Shown: positions 1,200 to 24,949, numbered from the stretch's first letter. The stretch: 24,949 nt of DNA from Neoechinorhynchus agilis (GCA_051530055.1 JBMGUZ010000038.1:1-24949); one strand, 5' to 3'. The notes: generated by a model not told the origin, from the sequence alone. Program-made: numbers and translations.

Positions 1200-1560
1200 A
1201 ATCCAACTGTTTAATTAAAACAAAGCATTGCGATAGCTGTAATCAGTGTTGCTGCACTATGACTTCTGCCCAGTGCTCTGAATGTTAAAGTGAAGAAACT
1301 CATTGAAGCGCGAGTAAACAGCGCAGGGTTTTCACAAAGAAGATAAGCAGCGAGCCCCGCTTTCACCTTTTCTATTTGCTCTATGCCTGGATTACCTAGC
1401 CAAATCCTTACATGATTCTAAACTCGACTGCACCTTCGGCGAGGGAGGAGAAGCTATCGTACTTCTTCCATGAAGACGACATCGTTCTTTTAGCGGATCA
1501 CAAAGACGATCTACAGAGAACGACGATCTCTTCTGCAAATTTATATATAATAAATCCTTG
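1200..1560 (+). pseudogene. Highly degenerate non-LTR reverse transcriptase remnant
   Basis: 1460-1519 translates YFFHEDDIVLLADHKDDLQR, resembling the (Y/F)ADD-VLLA..DLQ catalytic block. Frameshifted traces of KAFDS and a QG...SP.LF-like block lie upstream. Confidence 0.4.
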
Positions 1561-2960: not shown

Positions 2961-4258
2961 TACTCCAATACTTTAGCCATTATATGTACGAATTTTTTAG
3001 CTTGTTGCAATCATACGAAAAACCATTTTTAAAGAAAGCCTAAAAGCAGTGACTTTAATGTGATCCGCGCCCTGCCTCATGTCTTGTAAAGCGTTGCTGC
3101 GCCAAGAAGCTCCAAATGATCCATTTAGGGAATAATTCAATGATCCCCATTAATCGGTCCTTAAACATTTGACACAGTCATCGGGATTTGCATCCCCTAC
3201 TAAAAATGCATCTACAGTCAAAGCAATTGATAGCATCCTTAGATGGATTATGGAACAATTATGAAAACTAGTGGCCTCCAACAGTCGAGCGGGACCTTCC
3301 CGGTCCTCTATTTAGACTCCTTTATACCCCCTTCCCTACCATGGATATGTGAATCGCTTGAATTCGCACGATCTAGAGGTTTTTGTTGTATGTTCCCGAG
3401 GTGTTCATGACGCAATTCAGGAATGAAAGGTCCATCCATGTATTTGTCCGTATCCATTAATTCCGTCACTTGGTCGTTTTAACGAGTTTAATTCATCGTT
3501 TGAACATTAATTTCTGGTCGACATGAAAAAATGCAAAAATAATGATTTGTTATTGATTTGGTTTCGATCTGTAGAAGGATAATAAGGCTTTTTATTAATA
3601 ATTCGTTAAAATTGGCATAAATTTTTATTCATGGTACACTCGAAAGCGTTCGAGCGGAGGAAATAATGTATTTTTTTAACAGCAGCAAATAACTTTAGCA
3701 CTAAATTGTAAGGACCTTTAGAGTTTGTTGAAGAAGCAAAGTCAAATGAAACGTTAATGTAATCGCTCTGGCGAAAAGCTAAAGCTATAAAACTTTTTGC
3801 ATAAATGCAAGAATTGGTTTTTGGAAATGTAAATTCATTTCCTTCAAGATGTCGATGCTTCGCGATCACATTGACATCTTCAAAGTCCATTTTCATCCCC
3901 AATCGTGGTATTGAAACAAACAAAAATCTTCATCGATGGATACAAAAAATTTCTTTAATCTTTTTCGTCGCCCTCTGAAGCGTCCGATCGGACACTGTAC
4001 TCGTCATTGGGCTTTGGCCTGAGGCCGGAACTTACTGTAAATTGTTTCGAGATAGAAGTGAAAGTTAGAAAGCTGTTTTTCGCAGTGAGAGTTCGTTAGC
4101 GAAAATCGATACTGTTTTGATGTTCTTTTAAAAGTGAGCCTTACCTTAACTCACGGATAGAAACTTCTTGCGCTCTTCGCTATCTATAATCTCATCAATA
4201 AACACCCGTTATTAGCACAATCGCTCTCAGAAGCACATTCAAGAAGGGTAAAATTGAG

Positions 4259-5315
4259 ATGTGGACAATGTATTCATTCTGACTGATTCTGACTGATTCA
4301 AACAACAACAGAGATTCTCTAAATGGTGAACTTAACAGTCAAGATCCACACATACAGTTTACAGTCAATGAAGAGGACATAAATGATGAAGTCTCGTTCC
4401 TGGACGTCCTTGTCAAGCTTTCTGCACAAGGCAAAGTTAGCACTTCACTTTATCGCAAGGAGAACTTACCATAGGGACCACCACACTGGTCAAGTCACCA
4501 ACCGATGAGGTATAAAATCTCGGCTGTCACGTCCTACTTCCGAAGAGCTACTCTTATCTCATCTACTCGATTTGCATGGATTAGGGAAAGGGAGAGGATA
4601 GTACAGAAGTTGAAAATGAGGGTACATCCCAAATGGATTATAGACCGGGAAATCAGAGGCAGTAAGTACCATCCGCATAACAACAACAAATCTTCTGCAG
4701 AGCCTGTATGCTTCGAAAGAGTGCACTTCATTGATGATGACAGGAATCAAATGATTTACTCCATTATGAATAAGAAGGCTGGAATTCGTCTATACAATAC
4801 TAAAGGAATCGCTCTCAGAAGCATTTTCAAGAAGAAGGGTAAAATTGAGCCGACTAGTCTATCGGACAGGTTCGCTCAACTTAAGCAAGTTTGTAGTCGA
4901 TTTGAGCATTCGTCGATAATCTCTAATCATCAAACGACATGTAAGCATCGAGCGGATTTTGGTGGCACCCACTTTATAGAAATAGAGCAAAACTTAAAAA
5001 GACGGCTTGTTTTGGAGGCCTTACATATCGTTGTGTCCAACACAATGGAAGCAAATAAAGCTAATATTAGCTTGAAACTTCTAGCCATCGACGTGTTAAA
5101 AATCAATGCTAAAATCATGGGAAAAAAGTAGTACAGCACAGGGGGGTTCTAGCGGATAATTGGTCCCCGAACTTCGGGTTTGGCGATCCCGCGCACTCGA
5201 GCTTAAAACCTTAATGTGTAAAACTCATTTTTAGATGACTGATGATACGAGGTTACCTTGCGAAATATTTCCAATAAATCAAAATCAGATAAGTCATGAC
5301 CGGGAGTATGTTCAC
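4259..5315 (+). mobile_element. 5'-truncated Penelope-like element A1: RT C-terminus, thumb/linker, partly deleted GIY-YIG endonuclease and 3' tail
   Basis: Translation gives (Y)VDNVFIL, LNSQDPHIQFT, VSFLDVLV, STSLYRK, HWSSHQP.RYKISAV..YFRRA, then SIISNHQTTCKHRADF....IEIEQNLKRRLVLEALHI, all PLE hallmarks. There is an in-frame TAG near 4470. A hammerhead-like motif and AATAAA follow the stop at 5131. Confidence 0.85.
5239..5272 (+). ncRNA. Minimal PLE-type hammerhead ribozyme motif
   Basis: CTGATGA-TA-CGAGG-tta-CCTTG-C-GAAA-TATTTC followed by CAATAAATC. GAAATATTTC is a perfect palindrome, consistent with the dimerising minimal hammerheads known from PLEs. Stem I pairing is poor. Confidence 0.6.
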
Positions 5316-5620: not shown

Positions 5621-5729
5621 TTCAATTCACTTTCGGAGAATTTGTGCTTAGATTTATTCACGATGTGACCATGCCGTTCGACTGCTTTAGGCTATAATTG
5701 TTCAAGTTTACTGGTGTAGTTGGTTTATA
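5621..5729 (+). repeat. 109 bp dispersed repeat, also at 14347-14455 (+) and about 18557-18665 (-)
   Basis: TTCAATTCACTTTCGGAGAA...CTGGTGTA(G/T)TTGGTTTATA is seen in three near-identical copies. Confidence 0.9.
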
Positions 5730-5967
5730 TATATTGTTCACCAAGTGAGATTTGTAAATTGGCGTACTGATTAACTCTTATGATATCTTCTAAGTTACGT
5801 ATCGCAAATCCACGTAATGAAGCTAATTGTCTCTTGTATTTTTCGATACGTTTCCTCATTTCTTGAATCTCGAATATGATCATTTTCTTAGAAAAGAACT
5901 TATGAAGTTTAGAATCTTTGAACCCGAAGATTTCGGATCTGATTATTGCACACTGGAGGAGTACCAC
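5621..5967 (-). pseudogene. Probable PLE N-terminal region remnant
   Basis: Minus strand: ORF 5725-5967 is followed by TSKLEQL*PKAVERHGHIVNKSKHKFSESEL, resembling the PLE V.NLS...L(S/T)..E..LL block. The 18557 copy extends this to FSESELDLLNE. Confidence 0.4.
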
Positions 5968-6154
5968 AAAAAAAAGAATTTGATCACTCTAAAACTGTAT
6001 ATTAATGTTTTTGAGTAACTTTATCAAATGCCTGGGTGAATGTGAATATTTTATTCCGAAATTACCTTTACTACTGAAATGTCTAACTTAATGGATTTTC
6101 TGTCAATAAGTTCCGTTCCCTTATCCACTTTCGAATGTATTGTAAGATCGTATT

Positions 6155-6269
6155 GAGCTGTTGCAACATTCTCAATGAGGCGGGCGATTGTGACAAGCCG
6201 ATTAAATACCAAGTGTAATTTAACATGGCTTCATTTTTAATATTGTTATTGCTCATCGTTATTGATGGC
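6155..6269 (+). repeat. Diverged 115 bp direct repeat, second copy 7067-7181
   Basis: GAGCT...CAACATTCT.AAT.AG.CG..CGATTGTGACAA.CCGATTAAATAC.AAG.GTA.TTT...GCTCAT.G..A.TGATGGC is colinear in both copies without indels, roughly 75% identity by eye. Confidence 0.8.
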
Positions 6270-6560
6270 AGATTAAGATGAGTTTGTTCCTTTATAATCT
6301 TAGATTTTTTTGTTTACCGGTTGTTTCAAGTGATTGTTATTGATTTTTCGTTCTCTAATACCGGCCGTCATCTTGTCATTAAACTAACTCTTCATTGCCG
6401 AGGTTTTTCGTTTCCTTCTTACAGATCTTTTCGTGATCGTCCAGAATGTAGTTTACCGAAAACATTGAAGTCAACGATCTTCCCTAAATCGTCCTTAAGC
6501 TTCGTCGTAGCTGTTCTTTCCATTTGATCGGTGGCAGGAATGCTACTTAATAATTCCGGA

Positions 6561-6655
6561 TTACTGCTAATAAATGCTTGTAAATCAAAGGGCGAAGGAG
6601 ACATCTGCTTTAAGGTGACTTTGTTTGGTTCGGTTTTATCGTTCATGATCCTTCA
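6561..6655 (+). repeat. 95 bp near-identical direct repeat, second copy 16116-16210
   Basis: TTACTGC(T/G)AATAAATGCTTGTAAATCAAA(G/A)GGCGAAGGAGACATC...GTTCATGATCCTTCA, with two visible mismatches. Confidence 0.92.
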
Positions 6656-7529
6656 TAATATCTGAATAGAGCTGAGATTTATAATTTGGAAACAGTTATT
6701 TGGAAGACTTAACTGCAGGATCAATTGAGGATTTAGTTATAAAGTTATAAAGATGCGAGTAATCACGAATATTTTGGTGCCTAATATTTGTTAAGTAAAG
6801 CTATATTTTGCGATCGAACCTAAAATATTTTGCCATTTAGTAAATGATCGACTGAAACTAATATCTGCAACGGTAATATCGATTATTTATGTGGTTTGTT
6901 TAATATTTCCTTGATTGAAGCTCTTTCTATGGATCGTTGATACTTTATTGGAACAAATAGTACATTACCGTTGTCTTTATTTCTCAGATCTTCGAGTTTA
7001 ACTTTAGTTTTGTATGAATTCCGAGTAACGAAGTGCAGCACCCCGGTCCTCTTTCGGATCGATTTTGAGCTATTTCAACATTCTTAATAAGACGTTCGAT
7101 TGTGACAAACCGATTAAATACTAAGCGTATTTTTACATATATTTACCTTGAACTCTGTTGTGGCTCATTGCCACTGATGGCGACCATTAATAAGCCAGGT
7201 AGGGAAAAAAGGTAACTCCCATTATCGATATTGTTTTTCTGTTGCTGGTCATTACAGATATATTTTATTACTAATTGGTTTAATAACCAAAGCAGACTTT
7301 AGAATTCCAAACAAAATGATCACCGGAAATCTTAATCCAAGATTTCTAAAGATCGAAAATGGTACTTTATGCTAAGAAACAAAATTAGACAATTTGAATA
7401 GTGAAAGTATACATCATGTTGTTCGTGAACATAAGACGTTAAGTGTCCGCCCTCCTTATCCCTGGTTACATTTTCGCTTTCTTCTTTATATATTAGAAAA
7501 TAGTTAAACAATCGCTACTTTATAACAAT

Positions 7530-8848: not shown

Positions 8849-10169
8849 TGCTTCTATAATTCGTTTTAGTCTGCTCCGGACAAGTCTAGTGGAACTTTGA
8901 CAGTCAAATTTCGTTCAGGCTCAAAAATTGACAGGGCGCTTAAATTTTGCTTCGGCGCATTTCGTACATCTTCTTGAAGAACAACTTCCTTAATAGAAGT
9001 GTTCGCAATTGATCGCAATCAATTATCCGCAATTGATTGAATCAGTTTGCCTACTTTTGAACGACTTGATTAGTTCTTTGCGAATACAGTTGGCGGATAA
9101 TCAACAATGCAATCTTCATTAACTTCTAACTTTTGAGTAGAGGGGCAATGCTGCCAGCGTGATGGCGACGGTCGAGGAAGGACAAAAGCTGGAATTTGGT
9201 GGGAGGTGGTGAATGTAAAGAAAAGTAACCAAATAGAAAACTGTATGACAAAAAAAAAATTTAGACTTGTTCATTCAATTTATTAGTTTATTATGTTTCG
9301 ATGCCAATCGTGCATATTCTTGCTAAGCAATTTGCTTTTCTTAAGTTTCGAAAAAATGGAGGCTTTTAGCAGCCAATTTTTCTAAAAATAACACTTCAAC
9401 GACGGAATGTTTAATAGATCCCACGATGTTTTTTAAAATTCAATTTCTCCATTTGATTGATTAGAATTAACGTGTTCTGTAAGATTTCCGGTATTTTCGA
9501 GTAATGAAGCCAAAAAACGGGAATTCGTTTCCTCGGATACATTTTAAAGAAGAAGAGGCACAATGATCCGATATACGAGGTATACAGAATTCAGTGCTTT
9601 CTGTCTAACAGGGAGCATTTAGCACATCGATGCAGGACACCAAGAAGTGAATCGTTCAAAATAAGACCGTCTGTCGCCGACTTGAACACTCCTCCGTTTG
9701 TAATAAAGCACGAGAGCTTGTGCAAGAATAAATGTAGATCTCTTTTATGTAAGAAAGATTTAAACCACGAATAATTCAGAATGCAAACTCACTTTCGAAG
9801 AACATTTAAGCTAAAAGTTTGTAAAGTTGTCCTGCTTAATTATAAAAATGCTGAACCTTTCAACTTTTCTACAATTTAAATCTTTGACGATTTATTAAAA
9901 TTTTTTGTTAACATGCAACTAAAGCCAAGCAATGTAAATAATGAGTATGAAAATGAAAAAATTAAAAACAAATTGCTCAGAAACTTTTAAAGAATCTACT
10001 CAAAACGTTAGCTAAAACATTCATTTTTGATTTTTCTTTGTGAGTATTTGCTTATTTGTTGCTATTTTGATTAGAGAGAAATATTCAATAGTTTTTAATT
10101 CCAAAACGTTATAACAACGGTCGATTTGACTTCGTTCAAATTCGGCAACCCTAAGCGAGCAGCCGTTTA

Positions 10170-10726
10170 ATGGACACGAAAGCCAGCTACACACAAAAAC
10201 GAGAATGTCAATCGAAGCGTTCCGAATTCTTAGCCCTTCAACAAAGACTTCTTCGTCTATTAGACAATCAGCGAAGGGCTAAGAGCGTTGAACTGGTCAA
10301 TAGCGTTTTATGCGAGATGTTATCGTGTAAAACGAATCCGAATGAAGTAATAGAATCCGGACTAATCAATATTCTGTTCGAGATGGCAAATAATCTGTCG
10401 AATGCTCAAAAAGGTCCTCATACCCGTCCAATGAAATCGAATTGAGTACCAAAGACCTCTGCTGCCGGTTAAAAATTATTATCGGTAAAAAATACGCCAC
10501 TCCCAAACACCCGATGATTAATAGGATATTGATTTCGATGATTCAAGGAGAAATTTCGAGAAGTGATGTTCGAAACTATAATTTGGATGGAAACATTGAA
10601 AGCGATCGAAAAAATCCGGAAAATATAAGAAACACGGGTCGTGTCGATAAATTATTTAAGAAAATGGAGGACTTTATTCCGATTGGACAATCCAGAAAAC
10701 GTGCTGTTTTCTTTGGCAGCAAATAG
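10170..10726 (+). other. Two adjacent ORF fragments found only in the left arm, possibly a frameshifted Polinton/Maverick-type ORF
   Basis: LQQRLLRLLDNQRRAKSVELVNSVLCEML and DLCCRLKIIIGKKYA...INRILISMIQGEISRSD recall the RL.LL.G...AGN...I..IL..L...G.IS motif I associate with Maverick/adintovirus ORFs. This is recollection only. Confidence 0.3.
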
Positions 10727-10917
10727 AGTGGTAAAATGTTAACCACGGAGGAAACAAATCAAGGAAAAGCCGATTTAAAATCTGCGGTAAAAGCTTCACA
10801 AAAAAGAAGGGTAATGTCCGAAGAAAAGAAGAACGTGGTCGCTATGACAAGTTTTCATCAATTTATTAAAATCAACCTAAGCTTTGAAAGTTTCAAAGGA
10901 GCGACAAATATAACTAC

Positions 10918-11111
10918 GGATTTCTCAGGATGCCGTATTCTTGGGCATCCCAATCCTTCGTTGGGGTGGGGGGATTCTTTGAAACGAAGGATTTGTCGGG
11001 ATGCCGTTAATGTGGTACACACCATTCCATCGTTGGGTTATAGAAGGATTTCTCGGTATGCCGTAGTCGTTGTACATCCAAATCATCCGTTGAAGGATTC
11101 TTTAAAACGAA
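10918..11111 (+). repeat. Three degenerate 57-71 bp tandem units, mirrored at about 24460-24650
   Basis: Units anchored by GGATTT.TC.G.ATGCCGT start at 10918, 10989 and 11046. Unit 1 contains the hairpin GGATGCC-n9-GGCATCC. Confidence 0.75.
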
Positions 11112-11584
11112 GAATTTCGTGAGATAACGTCAAGCTAAAGGCAATAAATCAACTTATTTCGATCATTTATTCTTATGAGAATGTCGCGTTTTGTGAAAGA
11201 TTTGGTACAATTCTTCGCAATGTTATAAAGCTACGTTCTGTACTTTTAGTTTCCAGGACTAATATGATCCAGGCTTTTTTTAATGGATTGCAGACGTTTT
11301 TTGCAATTTTTTTAAACCAAATGCCTTTTGTAGGTTTTAGACGTCGGATTTTACGATTCGCATTATACCCGTGAAAAATCATTGAATCGATCTAAATATG
11401 CCACCATTATGACATCGCTCCTTACTTTCAATCTTCTTCACTAAAAATTGTACATTTTTTATCATTTTCAATCTAAAAAGTAAAAACATTGATTTTCAAT
11501 AGAATTTTTATCATGCAGTCACGTTATTTTTCATCAATACAAATTTCTCCTTGCAAAATTGTTTATTCATAGTTGCAACCATAT

Positions 11585-12215
11585 TAACCTCCCCGATGAC
11601 TGATTTATTTGTACGAATTTTCGTCTGTATGCAGACCTCTTCAGGTATCTAGAATAGTACGTGGTGAGTGTGGCTTGGGCAGAACTCTGGTGCCCGGGGT
11701 TGTTAGGCCCGCGGGTGATCTGTCACCCCCTGGGCAGGTCTTAGTTTGTATGGAATCTTCAGCTTCCAGCTTGGGGTATTCCCCTCCATACAGTTGTTGT
11801 TTATCATTACCGCTTTTTTGATTGCCCTCCTTTTCCAGTCACTCTCGATCATGATCTGATGAACATCCTCAAATCCGATTTCATGATTCGTTTTTACAAC
11901 ATGATTACTGATGGCGGACGACGTATCTGCTCTGCGCACACAATATTTATGCTGGTCAATACGCTTTTTTAGTCCTTGACTTGTTTGTCGAACATAATAT
12001 TTTCCGCATTGTCTGCATGGTTACTTTATAGATTATAATTTTTATCTTCTTGTTTTGGTTTCTTTTTGAATATACCCACCAACTTCGTTGCTGCTTTAGA
12101 ATATATTGACACCGAATGGGTCTTGCATCTTCTTATAAGATGTTGTAATTTGTTCAGAGTTGCTTCATTGATGAATTTTGATTCCAAGAATATTTTCTGA
12201 TTGGCGGTGGGTTTC
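11585..12215 (-). mobile_element. PLE A2 3' fragment: linker, GIY-YIG endonuclease and tail (left arm, empty CRE site)
   Basis: Minus strand: KL.GIFKKKPKQEDK, then frameshifted IIYKV.CRQCGKYYVRQTSQGLKKRI.QHK...SSAISNHV..TNHEIGFEDV....ESDWKRRAIKKAVMI, which is a GIY-YIG domain of PLE type. Confidence 0.85.
11611..11644 (-). ncRNA. PLE-type hammerhead ribozyme motif (left-arm copy)
   Basis: Reverse complement reads CTGAAGA-G-GTCTG-cata-CAGAC-GAAA-ATTCGTA followed by CAAATAAATC. Confidence 0.6.
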
Positions 12216-12224
12216 GGGTTGTTT

Positions 12225-12830
12225 CATTCACCTCTCGCTGAAAACTCATCCTCGTCTTCATTAAGGACTAGCCCGGTCGACCTCGTCGCGCGAGCCTGAA
12301 ATTAGAGAACTATGAACTCGGGCGACTAAAGGTTTATCCCAGATGAACTGCTTTAGACCATTCACGGGAACTTGGTAATAACCCGTATTCTCCCACCATT
12401 TATGGACCGCTACTAGAAATTCGTCCGCTAAACAGAACATGGGTCACAATATACGCTTTACCAGATCCCAACTAAGTTCGAATGATCGAAAAAACGCTGG
12501 CAACGACACATCTACTGCTTTTAGAATACCTAAGCCACTGGACGATACAGGCAATGAAGCTTGTCGCAAGGCCTCGTCTGAAAGCTGGATATTTAAAATG
12601 TGTTCGAGACACGCCTTCACAATGTCATCGAGCTTCTTTAACTTATCGACGTGCTTGAAGAAGGAAGCCGTGAGCAGTATATAAAGTAGTTTCGGGATGA
12701 AGAGGATATTCTTGATCAGGAATAGAGCCTCGTGTGACGAAAGTTCATGGACTCTATCGCACAGCATCGTGATGTTCAGGAATAGATGGTCGATTTCATA
12801 TGGACCCACGTTTGCGATTGAGATCTAGAA
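12225..12830 (-). pseudogene. CRE-clade non-LTR fragment, family 2 (post-RT thumb region), left-arm copy
   Basis: LCDRVHELSSHEALFLIKNILFIPKLLYIL...QASLPVSSSGLGI...SLPAF...QFIWDKPL is colinear with the equivalent part of the longer CRE at 22350-22800 but clearly a different sequence. Confidence 0.75.
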
Positions 12831-12842
12831 AATTAACGTTAA

Positions 12843-13324
12843 GCACTACAAAATATTTACGGCTGATGTGAACGCTCTGTTCACCAATGTCCCGTTGACT
12901 AATACGATCGAATTATCGGCTACGTTACTATCGAAGAATTGTAGTGAACCACTTTTGGACCTTGGCACGTAGCAGAAATGTACACGGCCCTTGAACTTGC
13001 CTGGATCTACAACGATTTCCAATACGAAATCACTTGGTTGACTCAGGTGTATCAGCACCATTTTGCGCTCTATGGAGATCGGTATGCCGACTATTTTGCA
13101 AAGTACCATTGGGTTGAATACTGGAATAAAATAGCTTTGTGGGCCATGGACGGAATGAAGGTCGGCTAAAATCGTAGCCTGACGCCTATGTCATAGTCAT
13201 TGCGATATTTTCAATAAAGTGTTATCTTTATTGCTTGATCGAATTCTTGTGTTACGCAGACTATAGAATCCAGGCCATTCGCTTTTTATTAATTTTAATA
13301 TAATCTTTTTAGCGCATGATTCTT
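12843..13324 (+). mobile_element. PLE B fragment: RT motif piece, aromatic-rich ORF and 3' tail
   Basis: ADVNALFTNVPLTNTIEL matches the PLE D(V)..LFTNVP motif. After a frameshift, EMYTALELAWIYNDFQYE aligns with the LLELCL..NYFQF block. The tail contains GCGATATTTTCAATAAAG, resembling the PLE A1 tail. Confidence 0.6.
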
Positions 13325-14455
13325 ATATCTAACATTTTGTTCGATCTGCGTTCTCGTCTATACATTCGAAATGTCCATTTTGTGCATTTGCACACTTAAT
13401 TACGTTCGTCGCAAACATTTGCTGTGATTTTAAGCTGCTCGAGACTCGGATTGCCTGAACAAATCGTGATCAAATCTCCTTTTCCATTGTTCTTCTTTTC
13501 TGCTTCTTTGATTGTATCAATCTGCTACTTACCAATAATCCAATAGAGAAGCCAATCGCGAACAACATAATTTCGGCCGATCCTCAAAACAACGAGTACT
13601 ATTCAGCAAATCCAATATTTTGAATCTTATGGAGGTTGATATTTTAGAAAATTGATTTGTGAGAAAAATGAAAATAATGTTTAATTTGAAAAATTTATTT
13701 TGCGTTTTGACGAAATATAAAAACGTCCTTGCCAAAAATTATAATGTTCTTGCTGTTCGCCGCTCTATTTTTCAATGCTGATTGTCGAGCGACGAACCAA
13801 TAATTGTTCCCGTCTCGCTCGAATGATCATCGAGTCGATTTCCTAGGAACGTTGTATTGAGTGAAACATTGCTATTTATTGAATATCACTGCCTTTTTAC
13901 TGTCGATACCCACAGAATCTCCAACGATGCAAATATTGAGGATTTTGGGACTTTAATAACGACGTTTCTGACGATGAAATTCCGATACATAACAAGAAAA
14001 TTGAGCATATAAATTTCCGCATATGATTTAAATTTCAGCAGCAGCGGTCTCGAAGACTTCATGCATCCTTTGAATTTTTAGGTCCGATGAAAGAGCCTAA
14101 TTGATATATTTATCCTTTTCGTCGACTTTTGCTGCTATACTATTTCCAATGTCTCTTAATCTCTGCGATTGATTCTCTCTATTTTACTACTTCAACCATC
14201 GCAAAATCGTTAACTGAACGTCCCCAGTGGTATTTATCTTCTTCGTCAATCGTTCCAACGTATCGTTTGCGAATTTCAACGATCTCTGTGAGTGATGTTC
14301 CCTCTATTCTTCAACTATAACATTATCGGGGATTTCGTTCGGTAAATTCAATTCACTTTCGGAGAAATTGTGCTTAGATTTATTCACGATGTGACCATGC
14401 CGTTCGACTGCTTTAGGCTTTAATTGTTCAAGTTTACTGGTGTATTTGGTTTATA

Positions 14456-15862
14456 CAGGGTGTAACACACCCTTAGTACTACCCTCTACAAGGAAAACTA
14501 TAACAGATATTCTGATGCGGTTTTCAGGGTTTGAAAGCTTATTTCAATACGCTTCTAACGATATACAGGGTGGATGGAACACACCCTTTACAACCCCCTC
14601 CACAGAAAGACACTGTTTCGCCCAATGCTGTAGAGGAAGCACTTCGTAGAAATTGATTCCCTGCGTATCTGCAAAGATACGTGATAAGCAAATACCATGG
14701 AAGTACTGCAGGGATCCGTTTGTCTAACGCCAAACCTTCAGAACCCATTAATTTCCTGAGAGAAGTAAAGCAAGGGGACCCCCTCTCTCCTTTGCTGTTC
14801 GCGCTGTGTGTAGACGATCCACTGCATGAGATCCGGAAACTTGATACGGGGTGCCAGCTAAAGAAAGACACTCGCTTGTCCGGACCTCCAAGCAATGATA
14901 GACACTCTTCACACTAAGCTCAAAGAATGCAAGCTTTTCTTGAGCCCTAATAAGTGTCAAACATACCATCATAGTTATAAAAGCTTTAAGCTCATGGTGG
15001 ACCGCGAATCTAGAATAAGGGTAAACGGTATAAAGCTAAAGGCCATCATGGAAGGAGACCCAGTAAAATACCTCGGGGCACTCCATGGAAGGAAACTACA
15101 GTGGAGGAGGGTTTTGATATTCTGGCGTCGCTTTTTGCTGCTACGGAGCGTGTCCAACTTACGCCAACTCAGGCCGCTCACTTGCTAAATGACTATGGGG
15201 TGCCATCCCTTGTTGCAAAGCTCGAAGCATCCTGGGACATATCGTCTACTAACTTGAGGCGTATCGACGATCAGTTGAGATCAAAACTAAAGAAACTCCT
15301 TCAACTGTAGAGGAGTGTTAACGATGGCGCCTTTTATCTGCCGTTCTCAAAAGGTGGGTTGGGATTTAGGTCCCTTGGCCATCAAGTACAAAGTACGAGG
15401 CTTCGAGCCGTGAGCGGTTATTGATAAATTCGGAGGCGTGATTGATCTCCACAAGGAAATCGGCACAATTCGCGAGTATTTCGACATGCTTGGTGACAAG
15501 TTCGAACTGGATCAAATCTCTTCAAATACCTCATTTCAACAGCAATATTTGAAAAAGTGGAGAGAGGAGACGACGCAATCGCCTGGAATCGACTGCTTTA
15601 CGAACGGAATGGTTGATCGAAGTCTCATAACTTTTCGCTATCGACAAGATCGTCATCGTTCTTATATAGAGCACGTAAAGCCAAGATTCCAAATCTTGGA
15701 AGTAGGCTCCGTTTGAGCCGAGTGAATCATCAGCGTGGTGGAGCATGTTGGCATTGCACCGCAGCGGTTGAATCACTAGACGGATGCGATTACACTTCTA
15801 CTGCAATGATCCGATGCCAAGATAAGGTGCGATCGCGTGTTGTGTGGACGTTGGCGAAGAGT
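14456..15862 (+). mobile_element. Truncated, frameshifted R2/NeSL-like (RLE-type) non-LTR retrotransposon
   Basis: DTVSPNAVEEALRR..P, VKQGDPLSPLLFALCVDDPL, LSPNKCQ, VKYLG, LYLPFSKGGLG, and a C-terminal CWHCTAAVESL..C......DKVRSRV zinc-knuckle remnant. Many stops and frameshifts. Confidence 0.8.
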
Positions 15863-15920
15863 CATCACCATTGGAAAGCTCATTTCAATACGGATTCAAC
15901 GGCATATCACACTATGACAT

Positions 15921-16115
15921 TCAATAATCAGTTGGGCCGCCATTGGCCTCCAGAACGGCCTTGATACGGGCAGGGTAGGAGCTCAAGAGGCGCTCGAACA
16001 GGCCGGTGTTTCCGCGCAGCCGGGTCAGCACGGCGTCGATGGCTCGACGCAGGGCTGCTTGGGAGTGGTCTCCGTCCTGCCGGAGATGCTCCTCGACCCC
16101 GTCCTTGATGATCGC
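15921..16115 (-). mobile_element. C-terminal fragment of a Tc1/IS630-family DNA transposase
   Basis: A 65-codon open minus frame (no ATG, so absent from the track): AIIKDGVEEHL...LFERLLSSYPARIKAVLEANGGPTDY*. This matches the Tc1 C-terminal L..S.P.R..AV..A.GG.T.Y* signature. Hand count 125/195 = 64% GC. Confidence 0.8.
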
Positions 16116-16384
16116 TTACTGCGAATAAATGCTTGTAAATCAAAAGGCGAAGGAGACATCTGCTTTAAGGTGACTTTGTTTGGTTCGGTTTTATCGTTCA
16201 TGATCCTTCAACGTGTGTACAAGTGTTTAGTTTTGTCAGTGTGTATTCTATTCAATAAAACCTTTTGAAAGTCATCACAATAAGCATAACCAATTTTTTT
16301 AAAAGCTTTTCGAGCACGATTCAACAAGTGCCAACGTCAACGTTTCAACACAAATAGTATTTTTCAAAAAAAAATGCATTAATA

Positions 16385-17050
16385 AAACAAGAATCAGAAG
16401 AAAATCATCATTCTAACTTTATTTCGGATGTCCATGTCTTTTGTTTAAAATTATCGCTCTTAATAAATATTTTAAAAAAACTGAACAAGTCTTGAAAAAA
16501 CATATAAAAAACTGATTGCAATAAATCGCCAATCAGAAAAAGACAAATCATCATCTCTTTAAATTGGATGTCAACGTCTTTTTGTTCATCATTTTCGCAG
16601 TTTTGAAATATTTGAATGATAGATAGCGACTCGTGCTTTTAAAAGCAATTAGAAAATGATTACAATAATTAACGAATCAGAAGACAAGTCATCATCTCGT
16701 TAAATCGAATGTCCCTATCTTTTGATAATAATTTTCGCCGTTAAGAAATATTTTAAAGAAACTGAACAAATTCTGTGCTACCATGGAATTAAAATCTGAT
16801 TACACTAATTCACGAATAAGAAGAAAACAAATTATCATCTCGTTAAATCGGATGCTACTGTCTTTTGTTCATCATTATCGCAGTTAAGAAATATTTAAAA
16901 GAAATTGCACAAATGCTGTGTTGCAAAGCAATTAAAAATGGTTATAATAATTCGCGAATCAGAAGAAGACAAATTATCATCTCGTTAAATCGGATGCTAC
17001 TGTTTTTTGTTCATCATTATCGCAGTTAAGAAACATTTAGAAGAAATTGA
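16385..17050 (+). repeat. AT-rich tandem repeat, about 141 bp period, about 4.7 copies
   Basis: The anchor GAATCAGAA(G) occurs at 16391, 16530, 16674, 16814 and 16956, each followed by ATCATCTC(G)TTAAATCGGATG...TTTTGTTCATCATT.TCGCAGTTAAGAAATATTT. Confidence 0.9.
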
Positions 17051-17587
17051 ACCGCCTCGAGTGCTTTTCGCTCCTGGCGATTGCAACAGAGACGTTTCCA
17101 GAAGAAGAAGTCTACTTGGATCGATAGAAAGCGGTTTTCCCTTGTTGAATGAATTCGCCTTCATATTATCCATCATTTTTACTGAAAAATAGTATTCTTT
17201 GATTGGTCCGAAAATCTCATCAACTTTTCCGATTTATTCTTTATTTTCCAAGTAGATTTGAGCATTGAAATAGAGGACGTGTGACTTGATCTCTACTCTA
17301 AGAACGAGTTGTCCCTCGCAAGGTTGTAGAATTTCTCCAGCAGGTTGGAAGGTATAAGGTTGTCCCATGTCAAAATCGCGCCCGCCTTTTAAAGATTAGG
17401 CCTCCGTGAATCTTTGCTGCCGTTGTGTTGATTTCGTTACTTCGCGATTTTCCGAAATTGTCGTTTGTTAACAGAATATCTCGTGTTGACTACGAGAAAT
17501 AATCTCAGCAGTATTATTGCTTCTTTGTTTAATGGGCCTAAATATACTTCTATCGAATTCGTTGCTGTCACCTCTTCGGTATGGCAT
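17051..17587 (-). pseudogene. GAR1: GAR1 (H/ACA ribonucleoprotein subunit 1) pseudogene
   Basis: Minus frame 17389-17051 reads [112 protein letters not shown]. This is the Gar1 core ([25 protein letters not shown]...YFSVK). A TAA at 17234-17236 replaces the conserved Q. An in-frame ATG at 17587 begins an eroded RGG-like N-terminus. Confidence 0.92.
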
Positions 17588-17930
17588 TGCTTATTTAAGT
17601 GTTTGTTTATCGTTACGCATTTAAATGTTTTCTGAACTTTTCCAACTTAATTTATCGCCTGATCGTAATTTTATTCTACGCTTGAGAAACCCAATTTTTC
17701 CTTAAAAAGATTTTCGTTTACGTCGTTATGAAGCATTATAAAGTTGTTCTAGTAAACGTGTTTGCTGATTAATTTTCGTGTTGTTGAACAAACTTTGAAC
17801 GCCTGTGTACTATTTTGTAGCTATGTTTACCATTCATAGTCTCCGTTTGTGCACTCGCTAAAGTCTACTTGGTTGGAGCGTCACTTCGTTTTCGATCCAA
17901 CGAACCATCTTCATCTCTCATCCTTGAAAC

Positions 17931-18315
17931 GAAATGTACACGGCCCTTGAACTTGCCTGGATCTACAACGATTTCCAATACGAAATCACTTGGTTGACTC
18001 AGGTGTATCAGCACCATTATGCGCTCTATGGAGATCGATATACCGAATATTTTGTAATGTACCATTGGGTTGAATACTGGAACCACATAGCTTTGTGGGC
18101 CATGAGCAGAGGCATAACAGAGTAGCTGCTTCTGCTCATGAAGGTCGGCTAAAATCGCAGACTTACCCTATGTCATAGTCATTGCGATATTTTCAATAAA
18201 GTGCTATCTTTACTGCTTGATTGAATTCTTGTGTTACGCAAACTATAGAATCCAGGACATTCGCTTTTTATTAATTTTAATATAATCTTTTTAGCGCAAG
18301 TTTGTTGTGATTCTT
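17931..18315 (+). mobile_element. Third, more diverged copy of the PLE B aromatic-ORF/tail module
   Basis: Matches 12975-13324 from GAAATGTACACGG to TTGTTGTGATTCTT. The upstream sequence is different and there is an insertion near the ORF end. Confidence 0.85.
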
Positions 18316-18556
18316 GGTATTTGCTTATCACGTATCTTTGCAGATACGCAGGGAATCAATTTCTACGAAGTGCTTCCTCTACAGCATTGGGCGAAACAGT
18401 GTCTTTCTGTGGAGGGGGTTGTAAAGGGTGTGTTCCATCCACCCTGTATATCGTTAGAAGCGTATTGAAATAAGCTTTCAAACCCTGAAAACCGCATCAG
18501 AATATCTGTTATAGTTTTCCTTGTAAAGGGTGGTACTAAGGGTGTGTTACACCCTG
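18315..18556 (-). pseudogene. Inverted copy of the 5' part of the R2/NeSL-like fragment
   Basis: Reverse complement of 14456-14697, cut off at 18315. Confidence 0.85.
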
Positions 18557-20153
18557 TATAAACCAACTACACCAGTAAACATGAACAATTAAAGCCTAAA
18601 GCAGTCGAACGGCATAGTCACATCGTGAATAAATCTAAGCACAAATTCTCCGAAAGTGAATTGGATTTACTGAACGAAGTCCCCGATAATGTTACAGTTG
18701 AAGAATAGAGGGAACATCACTCACAGAGATCGTTGAAATTCGGAAACGATACGTTGGAACGATTGACGAAGAGGATAAATACTACTGGGGACGTTCAGTT
18801 AACGTTTTTGCGGTGGTTGAAGTAGTAAAATAGAGAGAATCACCCGCAGAAATTAAAAGACATTGGAAATAGTATAGCAGCAAAAGTCGACGAAAAGGAT
18901 AAATATATCAATTAGGCTATTTCATCGGACCTAAAAATTCAAAGGATGCATGAAATTTCGAGACCGCTGCTGCTGAAATTTAAATCATATGCGGAAATTT
19001 ATATGCTCAATTTTCTTGTTATGTATCGGAATTTCATCGTCAGAAGCGTCGTTATTAAAGTTCCATAATCCTCAATATTTGCATCGTTGGAGATTCTGTG
19101 GGTATCGACAGTAAAAAGGCAGTGATATTCAATAAATAGCAATGTTTCACTCAATACAACGTTCCTAGGAAATCGACTCGATGATCATTCGAGCGAGACG
19201 GGAACAATTATTGGTTCGTCGCTCAACAATCAGCATTGAAAAATAGAGCGGTGAACAGCAAAAACATTATAATTTTTAGCTAAGACGTCCTTATATTTCG
19301 TCAAAACGCAAAATAGATTTTTAAATTTCTATATTTTTTTAATCGTTCTCACAATTCAATGTTCTGAAATATCAGCCTCCATAAGATTCCGAAAATTGGA
19401 TCTGCTGAATAATACTCGCTGTTTTGAGGGAACGCATTGCAATCACAACACTATCGACCCCAATCATATTGCTCGCCATTGGCTTCTCTATTTGATTATT
19501 GGTAATTAGCAGATTGGTATAATCAAAGAAGCAGAAAAGCAATGGAAAGGAGATTCTATCACGATTTGTTCAGCTCATCCGAGTGGCAGAAAGTGAGACG
19601 GAAATGGAAGGAACGGATGCGGAAAGTTTTCGGATCCACATAAAGAATTTAGGGAAAGCGGAATTGAAATGTAGGATTAAAAATTAATTTGAACGATCTG
19701 CAAAGAAGATGATGGAGGAAAGTTGAAATCAAATTGAAAAATGTTGGGTGGTGGCGGGCGAAGCTATAAACGGTGAGGAGTTATTTTTTGTGATTATGAA
19801 AAGAAAAAAGAAGAAACGAATGAAATTGAGATTGACGAAGAATTTGTAAAACATGAGATGCGAAATGCGAGCAATAAAGTGGAAATCGGGCGCTTAAACT
19901 GATATTGATCCGGATCAAATCCGCAAAACGTGTTTGGACGGCGATAAACACCACTGAAAAAAATTATAAGGTGTTTCGTGACTCCACTACCGCTTATTCA
20001 CGGTGCATTAAATATTCTTGATAGTCATTTTCGCATCGAGCAGCTTAAAATCACAGCAAATGTTTGCGACGAACGTAATTCGGTGTGCAAATGAACAAAA
20101 TGGACATTTAGAATGTATAGACGAGAACGCAGATCGAACAAAAAGTTAGATAT

Positions 20154-20644
20154 AAGAATTACAACAAGCTTGCGCTAAAAAGATTATATTAAAATTAATA
20201 AAAAGCGAATGGCCTGGATTCTATAGTCTGCGTAACACAAGAATTCGATCAAGCAATAAAGATAACACTTTATTGAAAATATCGCAATGACTATGACATA
20301 GGCGTCAGGCTACGATTTTAGCCGACCTTCATTCCGTCCATGGCCCACAAAGCTATTTTATTCCAGTATTCAACCCAATGGTACTTTGCAAAATAGTCGG
20401 CATACCGATCTCCATAGAGCGCATAATGGTGCTGATACACCTGAGTCAACCAAGTGATTTCGTATTGGAAATCGTTGTAGATCCAGGCAAGTTCAAGGGC
20501 CGTGTACATTTCTGCTACGTGCCAAGGCCCAAAAGTGGTTCACAACAATTCTTCGATAGTAACGTAGCCGATAATTCGATCGTATTAGTCAACGGGACAT
20601 TGGTGAACAGAGCGTTCACATCAGCCGTAAATATTTTGTAGTGC
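20154..20644 (-). mobile_element. PLE B fragment, right-arm copy
   Basis: Near-identical reverse complement of 12843-13324 (ORF 20318-20509). Confidence 0.65.
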
Positions 20645-20659
20645 TTAACGTTAATTTTC

Positions 20660-21270
20660 TAGATCTCAATCGCAAACGTGGGTCCATATGAAATCGACCA
20701 TCTATTCCTGAACATCACGATGCTGTGCGATAGAGTCCATGAACTTTCGTCACACGAGGCTCTATTCCTGATCAAGAATATCCTCTTCATCCCGAAACTA
20801 CTTTATATACTGCTCACGGCTTCCTTCTTCAAGCACGTCGATAAGTTAAAGAAGCTCGATGACATTGTGAAGGCGTGTCTCGAACACATTTTAAATATCC
20901 AGCTTTCAGACGAGTCCTTGCGACAAGCTTCATTGCCTGTATCGTCCAGTGGCTTAGGTATTCTAAAAGCAGTAGATGTGTCGTTGCCAGCGTTTTTTCG
21001 ATCATTCGAACTTAGTTGGGATCTGGTAAAGCGTATATTGTGACCCATGTTCTGTTTAGCGGACGAATTTCTAGTAGCGGTCCATAAATGGTGGGAGAAT
21101 ACGGGTTATTACCAAGTTCCCGTGAGTGGTCTAAAGCAGTTCATCTGGGATAAACCTTTAGTCGCCCGAGTTCATAGTTCTCTAATTTCAGGCTCGCGCG
21201 ACGATGTCGACCGGGCTAGTCCTTAATGAAGACGAGGATGAGTATTCAGCGAGAGGAGAATGATACGAAC
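20660..21270 (+). pseudogene. CRE-clade fragment, family 2, right-arm copy
   Basis: ORF 20678-21043 differs from its left-arm mirror by one residue (EA/ES). Confidence 0.75.
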
Positions 21271-22674
21271 ATTACATCGAAAAACAACCCGAAACCCACC
21301 GCCAATCAGAAAATATTCTTGGAATCAAAATTCATCAATGAAGCAACTCTGAACATATTACAACATCTTATAAGGAGATGCAAGACCCATTCGGTGTCAA
21401 TATATTCTAAAGCAGCAACGAAGTTGGCGGGTATATTCAAAAAGAAACCAAAACAAGAGGATAAAAAGGATATGTTGGGATTCGGAACGGGAGTGATGGG
21501 AATGAAGCTCGAAACCGAACTCGTTAATGTGGTCGATGAAATCATTAATGGACCTCTCCCACTTGAAGCAACGAATTTTCTATTCTCGGCATCTCTTTGT
21601 GCCCTTTCCAAATCAAACGGAGATATTCGGCCGATAGCTGTGGGCTGCACTCTAAGACGTTTGGCAGGGAAGATTTTGTGTAAGCGACTGAGCGAAGGTG
21701 TAGGTGGGCAACTCAGACCTTTTCAGTTGGGCTGCTGTACTCCATGTGGAGCAGAAGCGATAGTGCACTCCACACGTACCTATATCGACGCCTCTGCCAC
21801 CCCAACGGTCGTCCTAAAAGTCGATTTTTCGAACGCCTTTAATACAGTCGATCGGACAGCCTTGCTAAGTATTATTGCTCGAGAATTATCTGAAGCCTAT
21901 GAATACTTTGTGAAGGCGTATGGTTCTAAGACACCTCTACATTTCAACGAGCACGCCATTTGGTCCGAAACAGGTCTGCAACAAGGCGATCCTCTCGGCC
22001 CCATAGGATTTTCCTTAACAACCAATGGAATATATCGTAAGCTCAAGGCAAGTTTGAACGTCTGGTACTTGGATGACGCGACATTGGGCGGTGACCCAAA
22101 GACGGTTCTAGAAGACCTGCAATCCCCGCTTGTTTCTGCTGCGGAATTGGGCTCACGTGTCAACCCCGCGAAGTGTGAAGTATTGCCACTAAATATTTCA
22201 CATTCTCGCATGGCGGATACAATGCAGTCCTTCGAATCCTTTGCCCCAGGAATCCGATTAATCAACCGGCAAAGCTTCACTCTTCTCGGCAGTTGCGTCC
22301 TGGATGCGAACATATATCGCGAGATAGAAGAAGAGCTTCCTAAACTGGATGTTTTGTGCTCCCGCGTTCAAGAATTGAATGCACACAAAGCTCTCTTCTT
22401 GGTGAGAAACTGCCTATACATACCGAAGCTTATGTTCAAGATGAGAGCAGCCCCGTACTTCCGACACACCAAACGTCTCCTTGACTTAGATGGTTTGATG
22501 AAAAAGCATCTTGAAAAGGTAACGAACTGCGCCATCACTGATGAAGCTTGGCAACAAGCTGCCCTTCCGATCAAATACGGAGGTTTAGGCTTACGAAGTG
22601 TGGCTGGTTTGGCCCTTCCGGCATTCGTATCCTCGATGCACAAGACGGAGGAATTACAGGGGAAATTCTCTTAA
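21226..22674 (+). CDS. Chimeric 482 aa ORF: PLE linker (about residues 17-80) fused in frame to a CRE-clade reverse transcriptase
   Basis: The N-part KAATKLAGIFKKKPKQEDK mirrors PLE A2. From KDMLG onward come IRPIAVGCTLRRLAGK, QLGC, GAEAIVH, VLKVDFSNAFNTVDR, GLQQGDPLGP, WYLDD and LPIKYGGLGLR. Expression is not shown. Confidence 0.7.
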   Translation: MKTRMSIQREENDTNITSKNNPKPTANQKIFLESKFINEATLNILQHLIRRCKTHSVSIYSKAATKLAGIFKKKPKQEDKKDMLGFGTGVMGMKLETELVNVVDEIINGPLPLEATNFLFSASLCALSKSNGDIRPIAVGCTLRRLAGKILCKRLSEGVGGQLRPFQLGCCTPCGAEAIVHSTRTYIDASATPTVVLKVDFSNAFNTVDRTALLSIIARELSEAYEYFVKAYGSKTPLHFNEHAIWSETGLQQGDPLGPIGFSLTTNGIYRKLKASLNVWYLDDATLGGDPKTVLEDLQSPLVSAAELGSRVNPAKCEVLPLNISHSRMADTMQSFESFAPGIRLINRQSFTLLGSCVLDANIYREIEEELPKLDVLCSRVQELNAHKALFLVRNCLYIPKLMFKMRAAPYFRHTKRLLDLDGLMKKHLEKVTNCAITDEAWQQAALPIKYGGLGLRSVAGLALPAFVSSMHKTEELQGKFS

Positions 22675-23535
22675 ACAGAATGTCAAAGCCATTCAAACTA
22701 TTGAAACAGGGAGTCACATCATGGCTCTCGCAGACCGGTCTGCAACAAGCTCCAACCAACGCGCACGAACAATCTGCTTGGGATAAACCCTTAATCCTGA
22801 CGGCTCACAACAAACTAAAAGGCAAGATGGACGAGATGTCTCAAGCTAGACTTGTGGCCAGTTCCTCGAAGGAGTGAGGCGCATGGTTGAACGTTTTGCC
22901 AATCGGTACTCTGGGAACTTTGCTGGACGACTAGACAGTTCGAATAGCCGTCGCTCTACGCTTAGGACTTCCAACCTGTGCCCCACGCCAGTGCCGATGC
23001 GGAATAAAAGTTGACGTGCTCGGGAGACATGGACTCTACTGCAAGAGATCGAGCGGTCGTTTCCCAAGGCACGCAGAGCTCTGAACTCGATCCACGTTCC
23101 AACCATCCTGGAGCCCAATCACCTTCGGTATGACCGTTTTCCCTTGGAAAGAAGGGAAGAGTCTAATTTGGGACGCAACATGCGTGGACTCACTCGCCCT
23201 GTCCAACCGGCAAGATGCTTTAGCGGAGACGGGAGGAGCAGCGAGTGCCGCCGAAAGGAGGAAAGCGGAGAAATACAATGAGCTCAAACAAAATTACATT
23301 TTCCTTCCTTTCGGCGATGAAACACAAGGGGCGCTGAGATCTTCGGCACGAAGCTTTTGTGCCGAACTCGGACGACGACTTGCAGCACAAACAGGGGAGC
23401 GACGCGAGAGGATTTTCCTGATCCAAAGAATAAGCCTCGCAATCCAACGAGGAAATGCGGTTAGCGTCCGGGGGACGATCTCAGCTGTAAAGTAACTAAT
23501 TAACTTTCTTATAAAATAAAAATTAAACGAGAAAA
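21468..23535 (+). mobile_element. 5'-truncated CRE-clade non-LTR retrotransposon, family 1 (RT, CCHC, restriction-like endonuclease), right arm only
   Basis: RT as above, then [89 protein letters not shown] and QRISLAIQRGNA, with an A-rich 3' end. Lesions: frameshift near 22660, stops near 22875 and 22932, and the RPD motif is deleted near 23120. Confidence 0.88.
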
Positions 23536-23990
23536 TTATAATCTATAAGGCACCATGCAGACAATGCGGAAAATATTATGTTCGACAAACAAGTCAAGGA
23601 CTAAAAAAGCGTATTGGCCAGCATAAATATTGTGTGCGCAGAGCAGATACGTCGTCCGCCATCAGTAATCATGTTGTAAAAACGAATCATGAAATCGGAT
23701 TTGAGGATGTTCATCAGATCATGATCGAGAGTGACTGGAAAAGGAGGGCAATCAAAAAAGCGGTAATGATAAACAACAACTGTATGGAGGGGAATACCCC
23801 AAGCTGGAAGCTGAAGATTCCATACAAACTAAGACCTGCCCAGGGGGTGACAGATCACCCGCGGGCCTAACAACCCCGGGCACCTGAGTTCTGCCCAAGC
23901 CACACTCACCACGTACTATTCTAGATACCTGAAGAGGTCTGCATACAGACGAAAATTCGTACAAATAAATCAGTCATCGGGGAGGTTAAT
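23536..23990 (+). mobile_element. PLE A2 GIY-YIG domain and 3' tail, right-arm copy (separated from its linker at 21275-21467 by the CRE)
   Basis: IIYKAPCRQCGKYYVRQTSQGLKKRIGQHKYCVRRADTSSAISNH..., mirror of 11585-12038. Confidence 0.85.
23929..23962 (+). ncRNA. PLE-type hammerhead ribozyme motif (right-arm copy)
   Basis: CTGAAGA-G-GTCTG-cata-CAGAC-GAAA-ATTCGTA, with a perfect 5 bp stem II, downstream of the GIY-YIG stop. Confidence 0.6.
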
Positions 23991-24616
23991 AAGGTTGCAA
24001 CTATGAATAAACAATTTTACAAGGAGAAATTTGTATTGATGAAAAATAACGTGACTGCATGATAAAAATACTATTGAAAATCAATGTTTTTACTTTTTAG
24101 ATTGAAATGATAAAAAATGTACAATTTTTAGTGAAGAAGATTTAAAGTATGGAGCGATGTCATAATGGTGGTATATTTAGATCGATTCAATGATTTTTCA
24201 CGCGTATAATGCGAATCGTAAAATCCGACGTCTAAAACCTACAAAAGGCATTTGGTTTAAAAAATGCAGATAAGCGTCTGCAATCCATTAAAAAAAGCCT
24301 GGATCATATTAGTCCTGGAAACTAAAAGTACAGAACGTAGCTTTATAACATTGCGAAGAATTGTACCAAATCTTTCACAAAACGCGACATTCTCATAAGA
24401 ATAAATGATCGAAATAATTTGATTTATTGCCTTTAGCTTGACGTTATCTCACGAAATTCTTCGTTTTAAGAATCCTTCAACGGATGATTTGGATGTACAA
24501 CAACTACGGCATACCGAGAAATCCTTCTATGACCCAACGACGGAATGGGGTGTACCACATTAACGGCATCCCGACAAATCCTTCGTTTCAAAGAATCCCC
24601 CCACCCCAACGAAGGA

Positions 24617-24744
24617 TTGGGATGCCCAAGAATACGGCATCCTGAGAAATCCGTAGTTATATTTGTCGCTCCTTTGAAACTTGGGATGCCCAAGAATACG
24701 GCATCCTGAGAAATCCGTAGTTATATTTGTCGCTCCTTTGAAAC
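24617..24744 (+). repeat. Perfect 64 bp tandem duplication, right arm only
   Basis: 24617-24680 and 24681-24744 are identical. The left arm has a single copy. Confidence 0.95.
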
Positions 24745-24949
24745 TTTCAAAGCTTAGCTTGGCTTTAGGTTTTCGAATCCCTAGGATTTTTACATAATTA
24801 TTGCATGTTAACAAAAATTTTTAATAAATCGTCAAACCTTTAAATTGTAGAAAAGTTGAAAGGTTCAGCATTTTTATAATTAAGCAGGACAACTTTACAA
24901 ACTTTTAGCTTAAATGTTCTTCGAAAGTGAGTTTGCATTCTGAATTATT

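Follow-up and report, generated by a model that had tools for sequence, protein, structure and literature searches.

We analysed a stretch of 24,949 nucleotides from Neoechinorhynchus agilis (GCA_051530055.1 JBMGUZ010000038.1:1-24949), referred to below as the window, in which a stack of transposon remnants is present twice in opposite orientation. The two collinear copies form a left arm at 9770-14697 (4,928 bp) and a right arm at 18315-24949 (6,635 bp within the window), with a single-copy spacer at 14698-18314 (3,617 bp) between them. Read from the outside inward, the mirrored stack comprises the 3' fragment of a Penelope-like element, a fragment of a long interspersed nuclear element (LINE) that we call T1, an unclassified repeat of about 360 bp (X), further unclassified DNA and the 5' end of R, a degenerate retroelement bearing a reverse transcriptase (RT). 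The spacer contains the rest of R, a 142-bp tandem array, a Gar1 pseudogene fragment and a third copy of X (X3). The left arm is contiguous with the spacer and appears to be the ancestral copy, and the right arm is the inverted copy, which runs off the end of the window.

Collinear arms around a single-copy spacer

The self-repeat search of the window returned 15 inverted pairs that together line up as a single collinear mirror, among them 12221-13327 / 20160-21266 (1107 nt, 99%), 14058-14697 / 18315-18954 (640 nt, 97%) and 9770-9918 / 24801-24949 (149 nt, 98%). Block boundaries were then taken from gapped blastn and from a global alignment in which the right arm, reverse-complemented, was set against the left. 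Five collinear blocks were delimited in this way: 9770-9918 of the left arm pairs with 24949-24801 of the right (98.0% identity), 10887-12038 with 24683-23536 (98.3%), 12039-13442 with 21467-20036 (about 98.8%), 13443-13581 with 19585-19453 (87%) and 13582-14697 with 19429-18315 (95.3%). Altogether 3,948 bases (~3.95 kb) can be aligned between the arms, at 87-99% identity. The blast E-values of the arm matches are 0, and matches of this length and identity within 25 kb cannot have arisen by chance.

The two copies lie in opposite orientation, have collinear content and share identity far above chance, and the single-copy spacer between them is bordered by one ancestral and one derived inner junction, which is the arrangement of an inverted segmental duplication. 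The match is still 98% at base 24949, the final base of the window, and the outer end of the duplication therefore lies outside it. The whole window, including the derived junction, is free of N bases. The coordinates, arm lengths and spacer given by an earlier sequence-only reading of this DNA were reproduced by the repeat search, blastn and the global alignment, and its observation that the match extends to the last base was likewise confirmed.

Element R and the inner junctions

Element R lies at 14347-16210 (+) and is complete across the left inner boundary, with weak RVT_1 matches corresponding to motifs B to E at 14657-15185 (+). Its termini, 14347-14455 and 16116-16210, recur with 97-98% identity as the ends of a 1,035-bp element at 5621-6655 (+), and these shared termini fix the extent of R independently as 14347-16210. 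The first 109 bp and the last 95 bp of the element at 5621-6655 match the ends of R and its interior is unrelated to R; possibly it is a non-autonomous relative. Neither R nor the copy at 5621-6655 has a target-site duplication or poly(A).

In the left copy, R runs uninterrupted over the boundary between 14697 and 14698. The right arm holds only about the first 350 bp of R (18315-18663, -), cut inside the RT region at position 351 of the element (18663 down to 18315); it keeps the 5' terminus of R together with its upstream flank, and the 3' 1.5 kb of R is missing. The reading frame shared by the two copies, ending in '...VISKY', breaks exactly at 14697 / 18315. This frame ('...FPAYLQRYVISKY') continues on the left into RT motif B, and on the right it enters the reverse complement of X3. 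The shared termini and the broken frame bear out the earlier description of an RT-bearing element that crosses the left boundary and is cut at the right one. Retention of the 5' end and its flank together with loss of the 3' end rules out target-primed reverse transcription as the source of the right arm. The same truncation indicates that the right arm was copied at the DNA level, once R was already in place, and that 18314/18315 is the derived junction.

The spacer side of the derived junction is the end of X3. Repeat X was found by the repeat search and blastn at 12975-13333 (+) in the left arm and at 20154-20512 (-) in the right arm, and X3, at 17931-18314 (+), is an older copy that is 86-87% identical to those in the arms. 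At 18314/18315 the end of X3 meets R in reverse complement, the two sharing a single T (1 nt of microhomology) with no filler between them. The junction thus joins unrelated sequences, and it has the look of a rearrangement breakpoint and not that of an assembly path switching through a shared repeat.

The position of the junction bears directly on an alternative explanation, in which the arms are two haplotypes (or paralogous loci), one of which was broken inside R and joined by the assembly in inverted orientation, tail to tail, to a contig ending in X3. We consider such an artefact unlikely, although it deserves to be taken seriously. Both sides of the junction lie within repeats, and complex Penelope-like insertions have been noted as a source of trouble in assembly (PMC8557442). 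There is also a precedent in Adineta vaga, where none of the palindromes reported in the 2013 assembly survived into the chromosome-level one; their origin was put down to phased haplotypes that had been scaffolded wrongly (PMC8494291). On the other hand, there is no run of N at the junction or elsewhere in the window, hence no scaffold join; the junction lies outside any sequence common to its two sides, whereas a graph switch through X would have given the flank of X itself; and a spacer of 3.6 kb is easily bridged by long reads. A heterozygous inversion collapsed into one contig was also considered and was rejected on geometric grounds, because it cannot place forward X3 beside the reverse complement of 14697 while the sequence across 14697/14698 stays intact.

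Retroelement remnants and divergence of the arms

Each arm carries the GIY-YIG endonuclease domain of a 5'-truncated Penelope-like element. The left copy was located by tblastn at 11658-12020 (-), with its 3' part extending to about 10887, and the right copy by its homologues and tblastn at 23520-23867 (+), with its 3' part extending to about 24683. The stop-free segment 23520-23867 (+) had 1,895 homologues by phmmer in the representative library, with a best E of 6e-22. Eight RT-bearing homologues were scanned for domains; RVT_1 followed by GIY-YIG at the matched position was present in six, and all five of these eight homologues that are at least 750 aa long, except P0270, show both domains. 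The combination of an RT and a GIY-YIG endonuclease defines the canonical endonuclease-positive Penelope-like elements, which are known from animals only, save for one transfer to conifers (PMC8557442). The fragment accordingly marks the window as animal DNA. The layout of the homologues, RVT_1 with a C-terminal GIY-YIG, identifies the piece in the arms as the GIY-YIG endonuclease of such an element; the piece itself gave no direct Pfam GIY-YIG match even at E<=5, so that the domain was resolved only through the homologues. Searching with the RT-bearing homologues (tblastn) revealed no Penelope-type RT in the arms, which makes the arm copy a remnant truncated at its 5' end and not a full element. 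An Rfam scan (E<=1) found no hammerhead ribozyme family anywhere in the window, and the pseudo-long terminal repeat (pseudo-LTR) with hammerhead that characterizes Penelope-like elements was not found. A single Penelope-like endonuclease piece thus remains of the several Penelope-like labels in the sequence-only reading; tblastn gave nothing in favour of its 'PLE B' and 'PLE N-terminal patch'. Outside the duplication, a second Penelope-like remnant at 4202-5128 (+) comprises the end of an RT and a GIY-YIG endonuclease (tblastn, E down to 6e-20) and has no nucleotide similarity to the fragment in the arms.

The two Penelope-like fragments stand head to head, with their 5' ends facing inward, and a head-to-head arrangement has been described as typical of Penelope-like elements (PMC8557442). 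The whole structure could accordingly be a by-product of Penelope-like integration, in which an inverted 5'-truncated copy lies head to head with the main copy. We find this very improbable: the mirror extends 2.7 kb further inward, through an unrelated LINE fragment, X, unclassified DNA and the 5' end of R with its flank, the heads are 11.5 kb apart and not adjacent, and neither a hammerhead ribozyme nor a pseudo-LTR was found.

The second class of coding remnants belongs to LINEs that carry a restriction-like endonuclease (RLE). T1, at 12270-12803 (-) in the left arm and 20684-21217 (+) in the right, was recognized by tblastn (E down to 1e-25) and matches aa 303-487, the post-RT thumb region, of homologues of ~720 aa at about 35% identity; these homologues are of the family to which T2 also belongs, and T1 derives from a related but different element. 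T2 is a piece of 2,068 bp found in the right arm only (21468-23535, +). Its RT frame is open, within a 482-aa open reading frame at 21226-22674 with an RVT_1 match at E = 8.8e-19, and its C-terminal part, which encodes the zinc knuckle and the RLE, contains one frameshift and three stops. Relatives of T2 are proteins of ~720 aa from Lepidoptera, a tardigrade, sponges and many other contigs, with identity of at most 43%. No identical protein is on record for the 482-aa reading frame, and the level of 43% implies that the source genome is absent from the protein collection searched. In a profile of 28 of these relatives, positions 25-712 align to residues 409-1136 of R2 proteins in the PDB (E = 3.5e-29), and L1 ORF2p is matched in the RT part only. 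The motifs CxC...H...C and RPD...D.T...E..K..KY are present in the family consensus and in T2 itself. T2 therefore has the RT domain followed by the C-terminal zinc knuckle and restriction-like endonuclease of an RLE-type LINE, and the alignment of the profile through both of the latter parts of R2 proteins shows that it is R2-like. The names 'CRE2' and 'R2/NeSL', which the earlier reading had given to elements of the stack, hold only to the extent of an R2-like, RLE-type LINE or a weak RVT_1 remnant.

T2 resides in the Penelope-like fragment and not in ribosomal DNA (rDNA) or a spliced-leader gene. Its start coincides with the first residue of protein homology (21469), and it ends at 23535 with an A-rich tail that follows the stop codon. 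AAAA is present at both junctions of T2, and the empty site in the left arm reads GATAAAAA up to 12038 and TTATAATC from 12039. The GC content of T2 is 49%, compared with 38-42% in its surroundings. Since its boundaries are those of a LINE, with AAAA on both sides and a differing base composition, T2 most likely entered the right arm after the duplication, inserting into the Penelope-like open reading frame. Upstream of T2, 82 codons remain open; most plausibly they would be what is left of the Penelope-like coding sequence immediately ahead of the endonuclease domain. The 2,068-bp difference might instead reflect a loss of sequence from the left arm; this is less likely, because both ends of the difference coincide with LINE ends and because the open frame upstream would be better explained by the leftover coding sequence.

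Besides T2, two sizable pieces are confined to one arm. The left arm alone has a piece of ~950 bp (about 9931-10886), unique in the window and without a family match, and the right arm alone has a piece of 450 bp (19586-20035), also unique in the window. No target-site duplications were found around either of them. A perfect 64-bp tandem duplication at 24617-24744 is likewise present in the right arm only.

In the aligned 3,948 bases, the arms differ by 109 substitutions (56 transitions and 53 transversions) and 11 small indels. By the Kimura two-parameter measure, the three outer blocks have diverged by 2.0%, 1.7% and 1.3%, and the inner block by 5.8%. Within the inner block, much higher divergence, about 13%, was seen in a patch of scattered substitutions at 13460-13850 of the left arm versus 19270-19585 of the right; the flanks of this patch are 1-2% divergent, and it directly abuts the 450-bp right-only piece. 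Polarization with the element at 5621-6655 placed derived changes on both arms. Together with the substitutions and the small indels, this result shows that read errors do not account for the differences between the arms. The 109 substitutions, three indels of 0.45-2.07 kb and the 3.6-kb spacer exclude a read-level fold-back or amplification chimera, in agreement with the earlier remark that substitutions and large indels set the arms apart from a simple read fold-back. For the haplotype explanation the divergence cuts both ways, in that 1.3-2% divergence with large indels would suit the alleles of a heterozygous invertebrate, whereas the ~13% patch and the 5.8% of the inner block are high for alleles. 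The uneven divergence is best read as patchy gene conversion between the arms or conversion from a third copy, and the ~13% patch may be a region that was spared arm-to-arm conversion or was converted from a third copy. CpG is not depleted in the window (observed/expected 1.17), and no telomere-type repeats were found in it.

The domain content of the structure also bears on the suggestion, made in the sequence-only reading, that it might be part of a giant composite mobile unit, with the arms serving as terminal inverted repeats or paired ends of an element that moves as a whole. Only the size of the structure and the position of its outer ends outside the window favour this suggestion. Among stop-free segments of at least 50 aa in the left arm and the spacer, Pfam recognized only RVT_1 and Gar1, with no transposase, integrase, recombinase or helicase domain, and among the plus-strand segments of the right-arm-only pieces it recognized RVT_1 alone. 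Furthermore, the left inner boundary is not an element end, since R runs through it, and the arms are composed of dead retroelement fragments. Exact-pattern scans for X and the R terminus in metagenome contigs, and for X in prokaryote genomes, returned nothing, and thus no second copy of the tested arm sequences, which is weak evidence because these collections are unlikely to hold this animal. Taken together, these observations leave the mobile unit with hardly any credibility.

X had no family match, and eight unassigned stop-free segments, joined as one query, gave no match at E<=1e-3. For most stop-free segments, a collection of 5.8 billion proteins yielded no recognizable homologue, which indicates that the source animal is poorly represented in public data.

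The spacer and the left flank contain several further features. An intron-less fragment of Gar1, a protein of the H/ACA small nucleolar ribonucleoprotein, lies in the spacer at 17000-17395 (-; Pfam Gar1, E = 1e-15). It spans the whole core domain, its matches are ~50-55% identical and spread across eukaryotes, which makes them uninformative as to taxon, and it carries an in-frame TAA at a conserved Q; it is probably a processed pseudogene. The TAA raised the question of a ciliate genetic code, which was rejected because code 6 lengthened frames indiscriminately and restored no element; the stop is therefore explained by a single C-to-T change. The tandem array at 16396-17052 begins where the Gar1 fragment ends and consists of 4.6 units of 142 bp that are about 75% alike. 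On the minus strand the units retain UGAUGA and CUGA boxes, and one unit resembles a C/D-box small nucleolar RNA (Rfam snoR44_J54, 26 bits, E = 0.54, well below the gathering score). In the left flank, a direct repeat of ~125 bp (6146-6269 and 7057-7181) is 76% identical. A fragment of 28S ribosomal RNA at 1203-1399 (+) matches Rfam LSU_rRNA_eukarya with 77.9 bits over model positions 2134-2331; about 120 nt are well conserved and the remainder is degenerate, and the fragment is isolated in a non-rDNA context. Judging by the conserved 28S sequence, the fragment presumably ends about where R2-type elements insert, and it may have been carried here by an rDNA-specific retroelement.

Origin of the duplication and its relation to known systems

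A stack of unrelated elements that is mirrored collinearly at high identity leads us to read the locus, with fair though incomplete confidence, as a real DNA-level inverted segmental duplication, a palindrome with a spacer, that formed in a transposon graveyard through fold-back or template-switch repair or through inverted end joining, and whose arms then decayed independently. The fold-back or segmental palindrome proposed in the sequence-only reading is therefore also our best explanation. Except for the single nucleotide of microhomology at the inner junction, which is observed, we infer the steps of the mechanism. The ancestral order would have been the Penelope-like 3' fragment, T1, X, unclassified DNA, a complete R, the 142-bp array, the Gar1 pseudogene and X3. 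Where X3 ends (18314), a break or the stalling of a fork would have released a free 3' end. Within R, at the point that corresponds to 14697, this end would have primed synthesis anew on the complementary strand. Copying back outward would then have duplicated the first 351 bp of R and everything to the left of it, whether through repair by fold-back or template switching or through the end joining of an inverted copy, and would have left a right arm whose inner junction shows only 1 nt of microhomology. The insertion of T2, the 450-bp and ~950-bp indels, the 64-bp tandem duplication and several small indels would be later and independent changes of the arms. The ~13% patch may have been shielded from gene conversion by the adjoining 450-bp heterology.

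Several points weigh against this interpretation. The structure is known here from contig sequence alone, and its outer junction lies beyond base 24949. Divergence of 1-2% with presence or absence of transposon-sized pieces is equally expected of two haplotypes in a heterozygous invertebrate, and the derived junction is flanked on both sides by repeats (X and R), which are typical places for contigs to end. A microhomology of 1 nt cannot tell repair pathways apart, and gene conversion as the account of the uneven divergence is something that we infer.

The duplication has no evident function of its own. For the assembly it serves mainly as a quality flag, and the gap-free junction at 18314/18315 needs care before any analysis of repeats or copy number. 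If the duplication is real, it offers a clean and datable example whose direction can be read from a truncated retroelement, which would make it useful teaching material, and which also has a later LINE insertion and an uneven arm divergence that suggests gene conversion. For transposon biology, the locus contributes a Penelope-like fragment truncated at its 5' end and a short LINE family of R2-like type, whose closest public proteins are only about 40% identical.

An inverted duplication of transposon sequence of the Mu killer type reportedly gives rise to a hairpin RNA (Slotkin and colleagues, maize, 2005). The present locus resembles Mu killer in that a long stretch of transposon fragments is duplicated in inverted orientation around a loop; if transcribed, it would be a perfect substrate for double-stranded RNA. 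If transcription passed through both arms, the product would fold into a hairpin whose stem measures at least 4 kb, and small RNAs derived from it could silence the Penelope-like, R2-like, X and R families, in the manner of a Mu killer in an animal. We regard this role as improbable. Unlike in Mu killer, the hairpin RNA is here only a possible consequence, deduced from the DNA sequence.

With the head-to-head copies described for Penelope-like elements (PMC8557442), the locus shares a 5'-truncated GIY-YIG fragment in each arm with the 5' ends facing each other. It differs from them in that the arms hold several unrelated elements together with flanking DNA, in that the fragments are not adjacent, and in that no pseudo-LTR or hammerhead was detected. 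The false palindromes of Adineta vaga (AV13 versus AV20, PMC8494291) are similar in having inverted, nearly identical arms with allele-like differences in a repeat-rich region. Those artefacts arose from scaffolding, whereas the sequence here is free of gaps and its junction joins unrelated sequences.

Inverted duplications that contain a spacer and arise by fold-back priming or replicative template switching are established in yeast, in human genomic disorders and in tumour amplicons. The N. agilis locus departs from these known cases in that no short pre-existing inverted repeat is identifiable at the borders between arms and spacer, and in that, with the outer junction outside the window, its class may be terminal fold-back, interstitial DUP-INV or inverted insertion of a copy. 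It agrees with them in the collinear inverted arms around a unique spacer, in the presence of one ancestral and one derived inner junction, in the minimal microhomology at the breakpoint and in arms that later diverge and may be partly homogenized. Overall, this is an ordinary kind of rearrangement, a further example of the known spacer-containing inverted duplications and not a new phenomenon.

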